Shown: one piece after another, positions 39,740-46,415 of the stretch
Position numbering within the stretch: position 1 is the stretch's first letter
Layout: each line of letters opens with the position of its first letter
IMG/VR virus record: IMGVR_UViG_3300024503_000015
Coordinates: 124,001-188,000 of that record
DNA: 64,000 nt
Reading direction: 5' to 3' (one strand)
The notes under the pieces: model-generated
The model's input: only the letters and a program-made list of their open reading frames with translations
Databases searched by the model: none
What the model was told of the DNA's origin: nothing
Program-made: the position numbers and the translations under genes

Positions 39740-40474
39740 TTATTTGCTCTGTGCTGGCAAGATGTAATCATATACAGCAACACCGCTGTCAACAGTAATC
39801 TGCATAGCACCTGCATCTGCAATCTTCATAGTAATATTACCATCGAGATTTAAAATGCTTTGTACTTGTGCAACAGGCCATGACCATGTGTGCTTTAACT
39901 TGCCGCCAACATCGTGTTGGAATACAAAAGAACCTGCGTGTGTACTTGCATCACCGAAGAAGAATACAAGATTGTTATCTTCTGTACGAACTTGGAAAAC
40001 AGTTTCTTCACTGTGTGCCGCACTTTGTAACTTCAAACGACCAATTGCCGCCATGCTTGGTTCAAACTCAACTTCCCATGTTGCACCTTTGAACTTAACA
40101 GATTTTAGTTTTTCGTTAATAAGTTCTGATGCCATGAAACGATAATCGTTTTGGAAGTCACCTGCTTGGTTTTCAAAGTGCAAACCTACTGGAACTGTGT
40201 TGCCGTTACGTTCCGCAGTAACTACATCGATCTTTGCGTTTTCTTTATACTCTGGATTCTTCAAGTGAAGATTTAACTTGTCCAAGTTTGGCATACCAAA
40301 TGTGCCATCAAACTCTGATACTGGCTTGTGTGCAGTAGCAGTAACAATAACGCTACGATCCTCTGCCATTGATTCGATAGTTGTGCTATCTTTAGCACCT
40401 GTAATTTTTACCAAAGGCAAAAAGCCTAGGCTATGTGTATGTGCTACGATGTCGGTTAGAATATCTTTAATCAT
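39740..40474 (-). CDS. DNA polymerase sliding clamp (T4 gp45-like)
   Basis: 244 aa, adjacent to the polymerase; FGMPNLDKL...L and C-terminal YxYILP pattern of phage clamps. Confidence 0.7.
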   Translation of the reverse strand: MIKDILTDIVAHTHSLGFLPLVKITGAKDSTTIESMAEDRSVIVTATAHKPVSEFDGTFGMPNLDKLNLHLKNPEYKENAKIDVVTAERNGNTVPVGLHFENQAGDFQNDYRFMASELINEKLKSVKFKGATWEVEFEPSMAAIGRLKLQSAAHSEETVFQVRTEDNNLVFFFGDASTHAGSFVFQHDVGGKLKHTWSWPVAQVQSILNLDGNITMKIADAGAMQITVDSGVAVYDYILPAQSK

Positions 40475-40528: not shown

Positions 40529-43198
40529 TTAAAACTCAAACAGTTGATTAAATGTGTTCTTTTCTTCTGTGGATTTAATATCCCAGTTAAGAACTCCAAT
40601 TAAGTTTTCTAGTTTGTTATCTATAATAGTTTGTTCCATTTCTGCATCGTCGAATGGAAGTTCCATAAACCATTTAGGCAAACGTAGTTCGTCTACAGGA
40701 TATGCTACCGATGTGTACCCTAGCGGATTTGCTTTGAGTTTACATACAATAACTTTTTGGCCGTCTGTGACCTGCATACTATACTTGTCCGAATTCATTC
40801 GACGCAGAGTATTCCAATTAATACTTGCACGAACGTGTCCAGGCATATTAGCCTTGCCCTGTTTCTTTTCTTTGGCTTCGTACTCAGTAATGTTGTTGGC
40901 TCGCTTAGGAGAACCTTTCTCCCAACCAGGACGGGCCTTAAACTCTGTACGGAATTGAGTAATGTGATCTAATACTTGTTCTTCTGTAGCACCAGTTAGA
41001 ACTTTCTCAAGTACATCACTTAAAAAGTCTTGAATAAATGCAGGAGTATCACTGCGCTTCAAGTCTAAGCCCATGGCCTTGATCTTGCCTGGTTTACCAT
41101 CTACGTCTGCACGTTTGCCTTCTTTATCATAGTAAAGTACAGCATAACGTTTCTTAGTAATAAACAATCCTTTACTAGCAACAATTTCTCGACCTGCTCG
41201 AATAACATCACCACGACTTGGCGGGCAATGAAATGCCTGCTCCATAAACTTAACGAATGTACTGTTTACTTCCTCGCCAATTTGGTCATAGAGTGCAGTA
41301 ACGTTTTCCTTAGTCCAAGGAATAACTCCAGATTCGATGTCTTTCTTTAATGTAGTATATGCACTGAAATAACAAGAGTCTGTATCACCATAGATAACTG
41401 CCTTACCTACGTGATTGTATTCACCTGTGATAATTTCATTTACTTTACTAGCCATGTGTTTGGCAATTTGTCTACCGACTAGAGTAGTTGACTGTCCAAT
41501 ACGTTTATCGAAGAATCTACAACCTGGGTTAAGAATAGCACCATACAAACTGTTCAAGTTAATCTTTTTAACTAACTGACGTTTATCCCAATACTCTTCT
41601 TCGACCTTGTTACCTGCCTGAATACATTCTTTTAATTTGGCCTGCATTTCTTTACGTTCAGCATACCAACGCTTTAACAGTCCAGGAATAATACCTTCCT
41701 TTTCGTAGGTAAAGATTGTACCATTTGCCGAAAGCATCCAAGGCTGATGACTATCAAAAATAACTTTATATACTTCTGCACCACTGTGTACAGTACTGTT
41801 GCCATCTTCCCAGTCTATGGTAATTTCCACATCTTTACGTTGTGCCATAACTGCTTCGTATTCGTCAGTTCCAAACTTGCCTTCCCAACTGCCTGCAAAC
41901 GATTTCTTTTTAAGAGTCATTTGTTCATGGATAAATGCTTCTGTCATTGTAGGACGTAATTGACCTACAATAGTTTCCGGACCCATGTTAAGCGCACGAA
42001 TGGCGCTTGGATAAAGACTGTTAATATCCAGCGATCCAATCCAATCTTGCAGACCTTCTTTCGGATGTGCTACATAAGCACCAGCAGCCGCAGTATTTTC
42101 ATCGTCATCTCGTTTAGGACGATTAGGAACTTGGAAACCTCTACGATGCGCTTCGTTAATAATAGCCTGTTCGGTAACAGCCACAGCACCCATTGTAGTC
42201 TGTAATAATACAGTATTTTCATGTGCAATTTTATTAGCAAGGTCAATGAATTTAAGTTTTTCATCTAGTTTGTTTAATAGTGCAACGTCTTGTCTGTTAT
42301 ACACAATAAATCTTTTAAAGTCATTGTTGTATAGTTGATCAAGTGTGCCTTCGTAAACAGTTTTGTTCTCGCCAATTTCCATTTCACCGATGGCATCTAA
42401 TCGATAGGTGTGTCGTTCTTCGTAGGTAAACTTGCGATAAAGTTCTAGACTGTCTAAGTGTACACGACCAATTAAGTCATATGTTTGTGCAGTCTTGCCA
42501 TACTTTTCATATTCTCTACGTTTAGGAAATTGATTCCATAGACAGAAACGTCTTGTATCTTCTTTACTTAACACCTGTGTCACACGGTTAACAGTATAAG
42601 GAATATCATAGCCTTCGCTGTTCCAACCTGTGATAATGTCTGCATCTTGAATTAAATCTAAGAATGTTTCCAACATATCTGCTTCATTAGTAAACAGATG
42701 TGTATCTGGAATATCGGCTACTAACGCTTCGGCTTCAGCAAAGGTTAATGTCTTTGGAGGAAGAGCCAGTGTAATTAATTTGTCTAACCATTTTAGGTGA
42801 ACTGTGATAGCAGTAATTGGCATAAACGCATCTTCAGGAGTGCTATAGCCGCGTTCTGGATCGAAGTCCACCTCAATGTCGAAGAAGCAAATATTTAGAT
42901 TAGGTGCATCTTGATTTAGATAGTTTTCGCTTAGATGTACAAAAATTGGATTGATGTCGCTTTCGTATAAGTCCTTACCACTGTTAATGGCTAATTCTTT
43001 TCGAAAGTCTTTGGTGTTTTTACAAACTACCCTAGTCAGCGGATCGCCGTAAATGCTAGTAAACTTGCCTTTTTGATCCGGATAGTAAAACGTGTAGCGT
43101 ACAGGATGTTCTTTGAAAACCCGTTCGCCTTGGTCGTTTCGCTCTACGACCTTAATAATATCATTCTCTCTGTCAAAGAGAGCGTCAACGTAACTCAT
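40529..43198 (-). CDS. Family B DNA polymerase (T4 gp43-like), no intein
   Basis: Exo motifs FFDIEVD, GWNSEGYDIPY, YNRQDV; Pol motifs SLDINSLYPS, KINLNSLYG, YGDTDS, KKRYA. Confidence 0.96.
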   Translation of the reverse strand: MSYVDALFDRENDIIKVVERNDQGERVFKEHPVRYTFYYPDQKGKFTSIYGDPLTRVVCKNTKDFRKELAINSGKDLYESDINPIFVHLSENYLNQDAPNLNICFFDIEVDFDPERGYSTPEDAFMPITAITVHLKWLDKLITLALPPKTLTFAEAEALVADIPDTHLFTNEADMLETFLDLIQDADIITGWNSEGYDIPYTVNRVTQVLSKEDTRRFCLWNQFPKRREYEKYGKTAQTYDLIGRVHLDSLELYRKFTYEERHTYRLDAIGEMEIGENKTVYEGTLDQLYNNDFKRFIVYNRQDVALLNKLDEKLKFIDLANKIAHENTVLLQTTMGAVAVTEQAIINEAHRRGFQVPNRPKRDDDENTAAAGAYVAHPKEGLQDWIGSLDINSLYPSAIRALNMGPETIVGQLRPTMTEAFIHEQMTLKKKSFAGSWEGKFGTDEYEAVMAQRKDVEITIDWEDGNSTVHSGAEVYKVIFDSHQPWMLSANGTIFTYEKEGIIPGLLKRWYAERKEMQAKLKECIQAGNKVEEEYWDKRQLVKKINLNSLYGAILNPGCRFFDKRIGQSTTLVGRQIAKHMASKVNEIITGEYNHVGKAVIYGDTDSCYFSAYTTLKKDIESGVIPWTKENVTALYDQIGEEVNSTFVKFMEQAFHCPPSRGDVIRAGREIVASKGLFITKKRYAVLYYDKEGKRADVDGKPGKIKAMGLDLKRSDTPAFIQDFLSDVLEKVLTGATEEQVLDHITQFRTEFKARPGWEKGSPKRANNITEYEAKEKKQGKANMPGHVRASINWNTLRRMNSDKYSMQVTDGQKVIVCKLKANPLGYTSVAYPVDELRLPKWFMELPFDDAEMEQTIIDNKLENLIGVLNWDIKSTEEKNTFNQLFEF

Positions 43199-43210
43199 AT
43201 TTTAATTTTT

Positions 43211-43263
43211 CTCCTATGCCATTTAGGGCTGGCAAATACCAAACAAGTCATTTGTGGCTGACT
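43211..43263 (-). promoter_or_regulatory. Twin stem-loop element abutting the polymerase Shine-Dalgarno (candidate translational operator)
   Basis: mRNA sense AGUCA-GCCACAAA-UGACU...UGCCA-GCCCUAAA-UGGCA-U-AGGAG. Confidence 0.65.
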
Positions 43264-43278
43264 AAACCTTTCTTTATA

Positions 43279-43572
43279 TTAGTTAATTAGCATTCTGATC
43301 AAGCCAACTGTGTCGATAGTGGTTAGCAAGATATAGTTGGCTAGCATACCAAATGATTTTCTAGTATAAGCGGCCCACGCATACATCGCACAGCCGCTAA
43401 TCCATACAGGATACAGAGCAAGCAATGGCGGATTAGGTACAGTAACGGCCATAGTAATACTACAGCCAATACTAACAGCCCAGGCAAGTAACTCAACAAT
43501 AAATCGAAATGGATGACTATTCCAGTCATCCTTGATCCATTGTATAGTTGGCCCAAAAATAGCGTCTATCAT
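43279..43572 (-). CDS. Small membrane protein, 97 aa
   Basis: Three hydrophobic helices. Confidence 0.6.
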   Translation of the reverse strand: MIDAIFGPTIQWIKDDWNSHPFRFIVELLAWAVSIGCSITMAVTVPNPPLLALYPVWISGCAMYAWAAYTRKSFGMLANYILLTTIDTVGLIRMLIN

Positions 43573-43829
43573 TTGTCTTTGCCAACAGTAACGATAATTG
43601 TTTCTAAATCATCGAAATCACTGAATACATCGTTCCAGTTGCCTTTGTGTGCAATACTGATTGCTTTGTTAATTAGTGCAGGTTTGATTTCTAATTCTTC
43701 TGCTACTGCCTTAACTGTTTCTTTTAAGCCTTCTGTCAGACTTTCAATTTCATATTTGACTTGAACGCCTTCGTTAATTAGTCGCTCTAGTTTGGCCTTT
43801 TCTTCTGGTCCATAGGTTCTATTGCCCAT
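43569..43829 (-). CDS. Small dsDNA-binding protein (T4 DsbA/GapR-like)
   Basis: Size and helical pattern (EKAKLERLINEG...LKETVKAVAEELEIKPALINKAISIAHK) recall T4 DsbA. Confidence 0.55.
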   Translation of the reverse strand: MGNRTYGPEEKAKLERLINEGVQVKYEIESLTEGLKETVKAVAEELEIKPALINKAISIAHKGNWNDVFSDFDDLETIIVTVGKDK

Positions 43830-43853: not shown

Positions 43854-43882
43854 ATTATATATGTTTATTTGATCAGAGTCAA
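43854..43882 (-). promoter_or_regulatory. sigma70 promoter for the dsbA-like/polymerase unit
   Basis: TTGACT-17 nt-TATAAT. Confidence 0.8.
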
Positions 43883-43902
43883 CGAATATTTTGTCAAAAG
43901 AC

Positions 43903-43928
43903 AAAAAAAGCGGCCGAAGCCGCTTTTT
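43903..43928 (-). terminator. Rho-independent terminator
   Basis: AAAAAGCGGC-TTCG-GCCGC-TTTTTTT on the minus strand (C(UUCG)G loop); bidirectional. Confidence 0.92.
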
Positions 43929-45941: not shown

Positions 45942-45981
45942 AGCCATCTTCCTCTGGGTAAACTGGATATTCGTTTTCCAT
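45907..45981 (-). CDS. Micro-ORF, 24 aa (MENEYPVYPEEDGYDRPRNPYSPV)
   Basis: ATG overlaps the dps stop (TAATG), suggesting translational coupling. Confidence 0.5.
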   Translation of the reverse strand: MENEYPVYPEEDGYDRPRNPYSPV

Positions 45982-46415
45982 TATTTTAGAGTTGCTCGCA
46001 ACATCCATGAATGTTTGCGATGAGCATCTTGACGATCTGCTAGGAAATTAGCAAGACCAAATTCATTGTTTGTTTCTGCAATTTTGTACACTAGGCCAAA
46101 TAAGTTAGCCATTTTATCAGAGTCTTCTAATAAAATTTGTGTCATAGATAGTGCATCTGGAATCTCTGTTTCATCATCAATTTTAGTAAGCATAGTGAAA
46201 CGTTCAAAACTACCAGGAGTGTAACTACCACTCTTGCGAATATTTTCTGCAAAAGTATCTATACTTCCATATACTTCTTCGTAGATGTTACCAAATAGTT
46301 CATGAAATTCTGCAAAATCAGGTCCTTCTACGTTCCAGTGAAAGTAGTGTGCCTTTAGATAAAAACTAAATTCTGATGCGAATACTATTTTAAGTGCTTT
46401 TGCTAATTCTTCCAT
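45981..46415 (-). CDS. dps: Dps/ferritin-like protein
   Basis: KAHYFHWNVEG, FHELF, IDTFAENIR ferroxidase motif, KHSWML. Confidence 0.92.
   Translation of the reverse strand: MEELAKALKIVFASEFSFYLKAHYFHWNVEGPDFAEFHELFGNIYEEVYGSIDTFAENIRKSGSYTPGSFERFTMLTKIDDETEIPDALSMTQILLEDSDKMANLFGLVYKIAETNNEFGLANFLADRQDAHRKHSWMLRATLK

Follow-up and report, generated by a model that had tools for sequence, protein, structure and literature searches.

Twin hairpins, each probably a small pseudoknot, form a conserved RNA element before the DNA polymerase gene of an uncultured freshwater jumbo phage and are a candidate translational operator

Autogenous translational control of a replicative DNA polymerase is known experimentally only from T4-type coliphages. 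In phages T4, RB69 and RB49 the gene 43 polymerase, gp43, binds a small hairpin in the leader of its own mRNA and represses its own translation, and the loop bases UAAC/UAAA, especially the 3' AC/AA, are important for this recognition (PMC3014915). The operator of T4 was re-read for the present work from the T4 record as a 5-bp stem with an 8-nt loop, AGCCU-AAUAACUC-GGGCU, followed by AUAAACU-AAGGA, and that of RB49 as CUUUC-GUAAAU-GAAGG, with its 3' arm inside the Shine-Dalgarno (SD) sequence GAAGGAG. No pseudoknot is known in the gene 43 operator, and some T4-related polymerases do not autoregulate (PMC3014915). “Pseudoknot” operators are nevertheless found in other autogenous systems: the T4 gene 32 mRNA, which is controlled by the replication protein gp32, and the E. 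coli rpsO mRNA, which is controlled by S15, each carry a small H-type pseudoknot in the leader of the regulated gene, next to an A/U-rich ribosome-binding region (PMC3014915). The gene 32 pseudoknot lies further upstream and nucleates cooperative binding on unstructured RNA.

Paired or very small structures before an SD are also found in other kinds of control. The E. coli thrS operator has two similar anticodon-arm-like hairpins upstream of the SD which are bound by dimeric ThrRS and act as a bipartite autogenous translational operator. The guanidine-II (mini-ykkC) riboswitch has two small hairpins with identical conserved loops just before an SD, while the preQ1-I and guanidine-III riboswitches are very small pseudoknots at an SD, which preQ1-I occludes.

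The locus described here lies in a 64,000-nt stretch of DNA (positions 124,001 to 188,000 of IMG/VR record IMGVR_UViG_3300024503_000015), referred to below as the window, which is part of a 270-kb viral contig estimated to be 71% complete. An earlier note, made from the sequence alone, had pointed out two 5-bp/8-nt hairpins with matching loops, an 11-nt spacer between them and a core repeated with 10/12 identity, all immediately before the SD of the polymerase gene, and this observation was found to be correct to the base. The features of the locus, all on the minus strand and in the order of transcription, are the following:

43854-43928 (-), a terminator-like hairpin (43928-43905) followed by a sigma-70-like promoter (43882-43854; TTGACT-17-TATAAT), the probable start of the transcript
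43569-43829 (-), a gene for a DsbA-like small DNA-binding protein or transcription regulator, the first gene of the probable operon
43279-43572 (-), a 97-aa ORF with no family match
43266-43270 (-), AAGGU, the conserved 5' flank of unit 1, in which GGU (43268-43266) is the proposed pseudoknot strand pairing with loop bases GCC (43258-43256)
43246-43263 (-), hairpin 1, the distal unit, AGUCA-GCCACAAA-UGACU
43235-43245 (-), the 11-nt spacer UGUUUGGUAUU
43238-43240 (-), the GGU flank of unit 2, inside the conserved spacer UUGGUAUUUG, the proposed pseudoknot strand pairing with GCC at 43229-43227
43217-43234 (-), hairpin 2, the SD-proximal unit, UGCCA-GCCCUAAA-UGGCA, followed by a single U (43216)
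43211-43215 (-), the SD sequence AGGAG, 1 nt after hairpin 2
43199-43210 (-), the 12 nt between AGGAG and AUG, AAAAAUUAAAAU
40529-43198 (-), the 889-aa family B DNA polymerase gene, with its AUG at 43198-43196

The polymerase ORF carries the Pfam domains DNA_pol_B (6.5e-37) and DNA_pol_B_exo1 (1.2e-18), and its product is 27% identical to T4 gp43 (E 4e-59), of which it is a homologue. Its closest named relatives are the polymerases of the jumbo phages Phosso (a Sinorhizobium phage, 50%) and Atu_ph07 (47%) and of the Rak2/121Q group (44%), and a megablast search of the phage collection found no near-identical named phage. The stop codon of the 97-aa ORF (43281-43279) lies 15 nt before hairpin 1, so that the element fills the whole 80-nt intercistronic gap. 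The DsbA-like gene is assigned from a PF11126 match at 1e-4, which is below the Pfam cut-off, and from matches to phrog_12534 (4.9e-19) and phrog_639 (“transcriptional regulator”, 3.5e-11). The strong terminator-like hairpin (AAAAAGCGGC-TTCG-GCCGCTTTTT plus a T run) and the near-consensus promoter, which rest on a consensus scan only, suggest transcription by the host RNA polymerase of a DsbA-like / 97-aa / polymerase operon, in which the polymerase is probably the third cistron. Neighbouring genes at 45981-46415 and 39740-40474 (minus strand) match phrog_3636 (“DNA binding protein”, 9.5e-27) and phrog_12062 (unknown function, 1.9e-34), the latter occupying the position at which the record of Phosso annotates a sliding-clamp beta subunit, and the polymerase therefore lies in a replication-type module.

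Folding energy alone does not distinguish the element from shuffled sequence. Each hairpin folds by itself (-4.5 and -6.9 kcal/mol, with 3 and 2 of 200 shuffles folding as well), but the 56-nt and 96-nt regions are not more stable than shuffles (z -0.39 and -0.28), a measure which is uninformative for hairpins this small, and relaxed hairpin patterns occur in the genome at background frequency (103 against 119 +/- 12). The core CAGCCNNAAAUG occurs exactly twice in the window, and a 5-bp stem with a GCCNNAAN loop occurs exactly twice on both strands of the 270-kb contig. The hairpins alone would therefore not be beyond chance, and it is the comparison with relatives, which the earlier note had named as a check, that establishes them as real.

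A polymerase-based search of IMG/VR returned 80 loci with 78-100% identical polymerases (individual loci are denoted below by L numbers). In 79 of these the twin hairpins sit directly before the polymerase start, and in the remaining one, L056, they sit 137 nt upstream. A covariance model of the twin element hit exactly once per locus in 50 loci and in a further 70 found with the L056 polymerase as query (74-79% identical to L056), always at the head of the polymerase translational unit, so that the element precedes the polymerase in 120 of 120 related contigs with polymerases 74-100% identical. In 48 distinct leaders aligned without reference to structure, hairpin 2 is paired in 100% of cells, with three of its five pairs covarying (UA/CG; CG/GC/AU; AU/GU/GC), while hairpin 1 is paired in 81% of cells, with all five pairs covarying and some relatives carrying a bulged 5' arm. 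Eight of the 10 pairs show double changes, none of 500 shuffles reaches the observed score, sliding the partners as a control gives only 18-41% pairing, and G.U pairs occur only in the sense orientation. RNAalifold independently recovers both helices. The loops, in contrast to the stems, are conserved (GCCNNAAN), loop 1 being mostly GCCAUAAN and loop 2 GCCNNAAA.

The unit is larger than the hairpin that the earlier note described, because each stem is preceded, 2-3 nt upstream, by a conserved GGU, as AAGGU-N2 (AAGGU-UU in the window) in unit 1 and as UUGGU-AUU in unit 2 (UGUUU-GGU-AUU in the window). This triplet is antiparallel-complementary to the first three loop bases GCC (G-C, G-C, U.G), and complementarity is kept by the variants GGC with GCC, GGU with ACC, and AGU with GCU, the last a double change seen in the distal unit of loci L068 and L123. 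In the 48 distinct leaders the G of the unit 1 flank is invariant, as are G41 and G42 of the alignment at the unit 2 flank. The flank and loop triplets are fully complementary in 69 of 79 distal units, those of L068 and L123 included.

The sample was widened using polymerases of sister clades as queries. Clade A (L246-L325; polymerase 64-68.5% identical to that of the window) keeps only the SD-proximal unit, as GG(C/U), 2-4 nt, stem, GCCAUAAN, stem, with the stems CCG/CGG, CCA/UGG, GUGG/CCAC, GCGA/UCGC and GGCAG/CUGCC; when the stem is 3 bp, its 3' arm is itself the first half of the SD (CGGAG or UGGAG). Clade B (L326-L400; about 62% identical) has AG(U/C), 2-3 nt, stem, GCU-NNAAN, stem, so that A-U replaces G-C at the first flank/loop pair across the clade, while a subgroup has GGU/GCC; the change is also seen between L363-type and L365-type leaders. 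An alignment was then made of 127 distinct proximal units which were chosen for the hairpin, the loop pattern and a following GGA, but not for the flank. In this set the first proposed flank/loop pair is GC in 96 units, AU in 29 and other in 1; the second is GC in 126 and other in 1; and the third is UG in 118, CG in 6, UA in 2 and other in 1, for 99.2% pairing overall. The complete pairing of the hairpin itself in this set is by construction, the unbiased hairpin test being that on the 48 leaders. There are 25 distinct variants of the hairpin 2 stem across the clades.

Each unit is therefore probably a small H-type pseudoknot, made up of a 3-bp helix, a 1-4-nt crossing loop, a 3-6-bp helix and a 5-nt A-rich loop whose two invariant A residues could, by inference, lie in the minor groove. 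This second helix is supported by covariation, but the support rests mainly on one pair, since only one of the three pairs shows double changes, with perhaps three to four independent events. A 5-bp hairpin with a GCC/ACC-NNAAN loop followed by GGA also recurs inside the 3' part of the polymerase coding region in some relatives (L019:5504-5540, L042:5498-5534, L054:5504-5540, L096:3995-4031, L100:3995-4031, L142:4001-4037, L160:4001-4037), but it lacks a complementary flank (GAA), is absent from the window and is probably a by-product of coding sequence.

The SD-proximal unit is the ancestral core, kept in clades down to about 62% polymerase identity, and the distal hairpin is a second copy of it which arose by duplication in the clade of the window, where it usually lies 29 nt upstream. 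In clades A and B the distal hairpin, about 40-75 nt upstream of the polymerase start, is a different stem-loop, framed by conserved (GA)GUCG on the 5' side and CAUG(A/U)A(U/G) on the 3' side, with covarying stems and variable loops (ACGUUAC, CGUAA, CUCAA, ACCC); it is a second conserved structure in the same leader. Several other sister clades (polymerase 63-65% identical to that of the window) have no leader at all. In such clades (L184, L194, L203, L205, L207, L180, L183, L196 and L202, about 100 nt upstream of the polymerase start) the homologue of the 97-aa ORF, ending ...GLIRM..., runs right up to or overlaps the polymerase start codon, which suggests translational coupling in place of the operator. 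Phosso, Atu_ph07 and contigs related to Phosso (polymerase 48-53% identical to that of the window) lack the motif. In six loci from two clades a 40-57-aa ORF is inserted between the unit and the polymerase (L056:1858-1998, L124:1392-1514, L161:1015-1188, L329:152-304, L332:131-304, L344:152-304). It is cysteine-rich, in five of the six with CxxC followed by further cysteines (for example CEGCTHPDSCNNC and CDDCPNPNGCITRC), L124 having only CEPC, and its stop overlaps or lies a few nt past the polymerase ATG; it may be a small zinc-binding protein translationally coupled to the polymerase. The unit stays in front of the inserted ORF, and thus marks the head of the polymerase translational unit. 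Many relatives have 4-8 nt between the SD and the start codon where the subclade of the window has 12, and 15 of the 48 distinct leaders start the polymerase with the weak codon TTG.

The unit is also specific to this gene. The twin model, a single-unit model and regular-expression scans found it only in the polymerase leader in four large genomes that carry it (the contig of the window and three others of 278, 374 and 320 kb, the last two 100% and 93% complete), bacterial genomes being outside the scan; the best other hits had E of 0.1-2, and a 97%-complete genome from a clade without the leader has none. No Rfam family relevant to the element matched at E<=10 in 42700-43800, no RegA gene (PF01818) was found in the same four genomes, the target here being structured and unique, in contrast to the multiple A/U-rich targets at start codons of RegA-type repression, and literature searches found no description of this motif.

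Twenty-two riverine metatranscriptome runs contain the region, and contigs from four of them cover both flanks and all break within the 36-nt core at 43209-43244, the most conserved part, which has roughly double the word depth of its flanks. One loose end carries a TGCGG-GCCATAAG-CCGCA hairpin 1 variant belonging to a co-occurring relative, so several related strains that share the hairpin 2 core co-occur in the same samples. Because the runs are stored as assembled contigs, they show presence in RNA libraries only, without transcript ends, strand or expression level, and do not exclude DNA carry-over.

A unique, structured element that abuts or contains the SD of one gene inside an operon is most simply a gene-specific translational operator. 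The 58-nt stretch 43268-43211 is interpreted as a cis-acting structured RNA in the intercistronic leader of the polymerase mRNA, consisting of two tandem copies, 29 nt apart, of the unit R-G-Y, 1-4 nt, a 3-6 bp stem, a loop G-C-Y'-N-N-A-A-N and the closing arm, in which the R-G-Y triplet would pair with the first three loop bases to give a 3-bp helix stacked on the 5-bp hairpin stem. In this view the folded unit, stabilised by a bound factor, would hinder 30S binding and so set polymerase translation independently of the upstream genes on the same transcript; the most likely factor would be the polymerase itself when it is not engaged on DNA, as for gp43 of T4, RB69 and RB49, and the second copy would add a second binding site. 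What the analysis demonstrates is the structure, its conservation, its covariation and its uniqueness to the polymerase leader, whereas translational repression, binding by the polymerase or by any protein, and cooperativity between the copies are inferred. It is very nearly certain that the conserved RNA structure is real and likely that it controls translation initiation, but the identification of the polymerase as the binder, although plausible by analogy, is tentative and stands at somewhat less than an even chance.

The resemblance to the gene 43 operator lies in the position of the element in the leader of a gp43-homologous polymerase gene, in the small hairpin, which covariation indicates really forms and which lies directly upstream of the SD or, as in RB49 and clade A, overlaps it, and in its gene specificity. 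The loops have an invariant AA, usually within UAAA, but this occupies loop positions 5-8 rather than 3-6, and the 5' half of the loop is probably paired. There are two units rather than one, the loop is GCCNNAAN with its first three bases probably paired to an upstream GGU, and no complementary flank was found in T4 or RB49. The polymerase, moreover, is only 27% identical to T4 gp43, almost nothing beyond the paired bases and the AA is sequence-conserved across clades, which fits shape recognition or a protein-free structural role as well as it fits a sequence-specific repressor, and the clades without a leader indicate that the inferred control is dispensable. The earlier note had read the element as a duplicated autogenous operator with a new loop sequence, possibly cooperative, and this reading is supported only in part: the conserved structured RNA at the polymerase ribosome-binding site, the duplication of one unit and the parallel with the T4 architecture hold, while autogenous and cooperative action remain inferences, and the loop is not simply a new single-stranded recognition sequence, since the probable pairing of GCC leaves only NNAAN, usually NUAAA, as the exposed or minor-groove part. 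The element is accordingly best classed, provisionally, with the gp43-type operators, from which it differs by the probable pseudoknot, the loop register and the duplication. In comparison with the T4 gene 32 and rpsO operators, the gene and protein differ, the helix and loop sizes differ, and the units are tandem.

Two alternatives are unlikely but survive about equally well. The first is that the element acts without a protein, either as a fixed brake or standby site that sets a low polymerase translation rate, or as a barrier that protects the polymerase cistron from 5'-end-dependent or 5'-to-3' RNA decay or from processing within the polycistronic mRNA. This is consistent with the almost purely structural conservation across clades (the paired bases plus an AA suited to minor-groove contacts), with the intercistronic position in a probable operon and with the clade A stems that contain half of the SD. 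However, any hairpin could attenuate translation, and the strict conservation of one particular 26-nt pseudoknot geometry and of the AA down to about 62% polymerase identity, together with the duplication, argue for recognition by something. The second, marginally less probable, is that the element is a translational operator bound by another phage- or host-encoded RNA-binding protein, possibly a dimer contacting the two units. Two equivalent units 29 nt apart would suit a dimeric binder, as in the thrS operator (although the loops here are 8 nt and not anticodon-like, and the polymerase has no known tRNA-like ligand), the different distal hairpin of the sister clades makes two different recognition events conceivable, and nothing but position links the RNA to the polymerase protein. 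Against this, general regulators such as RegA have many targets whereas the unit is unique to the polymerase leader in near-complete genomes, no RegA homologue was found, and no candidate RNA-binding gene is syntenic with the element, its neighbours being the DsbA-like DNA binder and the unannotated 97-aa ORF, which is absent from L056-type loci.

A tandem riboswitch, in which each mini-pseudoknot binds a small molecule such as a nucleotide-related metabolite and ligand binding sequesters or frees the SD, is less likely still. The architecture recalls the guanidine-II, preQ1-I and guanidine-III riboswitches, and tandem aptamers are known, but the loop sequences are unrelated to those of guanidine-II and preQ1-I and are not self-complementary, so they cannot kiss, the motif is seen only before the polymerase, or before a small ORF coupled to it, once per genome and in one phage lineage, very few unpaired conserved bases are available for a ligand pocket, and nothing suggests a ligand. 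If the unit were nonetheless an exceptionally small (about 26 nt) ligand-sensing aptamer, used singly or in tandem to tie polymerase synthesis to a metabolite such as a nucleotide pool signal, which is improbable, it would be a new riboswitch class found only in uncultivated freshwater jumbo phages. Pairing of the two loops with each other, or of a loop with the GGUAUUU spacer, was rejected because the sequences are not antiparallel-complementary, and an upstream ORF, in which an AUG inside hairpin 1 (43251-43249) opens 18 codons ending in a UGA that overlaps the polymerase AUG, was rejected because that AUG is absent from the GC-type hairpin 1 variants. Action at the DNA level (a palindromic protein operator, a promoter, a terminator or a hairpin-forming DNA site) or a chance pair of inverted repeats is very unlikely, although inverted repeats could in principle bind dimeric DNA-binding proteins and a DsbA-like DNA binder is encoded just upstream, because the half-sites vary freely while the centre is conserved, the opposite of a DNA operator, because G.U pairs occur only on the sense strand and the third pseudoknot pair, U.G in 118 of 127 units, would be A.C on the other strand, because there is no run of U for a terminator, and because chance is excluded by the 120 of 120 conservation with covariation.

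How the gp43 polymerase tells its operator from other nucleic acid is still unsolved, and no gp43-RNA structure exists (PMC3014915). The present element offers a second operator-like RNA with a different architecture at the same gene, supported by natural covariation across more than 200 distinct leader sequences and belonging to a very abundant lineage of uncultivated freshwater jumbo phages (a word search returned 8000 scored candidates, at least 120 of them at least 80% identical). It provides a short (under 60 nt), well-defined RNA and a defined protein whose binding can be addressed directly, together with natural single, double and absent variants for comparison. If the polymerase does not bind, the motif is a new orphan cis-regulatory RNA that could be added to RNA family databases; if it does, the result would show that polymerase autoregulation is old and widespread in the T4-like replication module, and that the operator can be rebuilt as a pseudoknot and duplicated.
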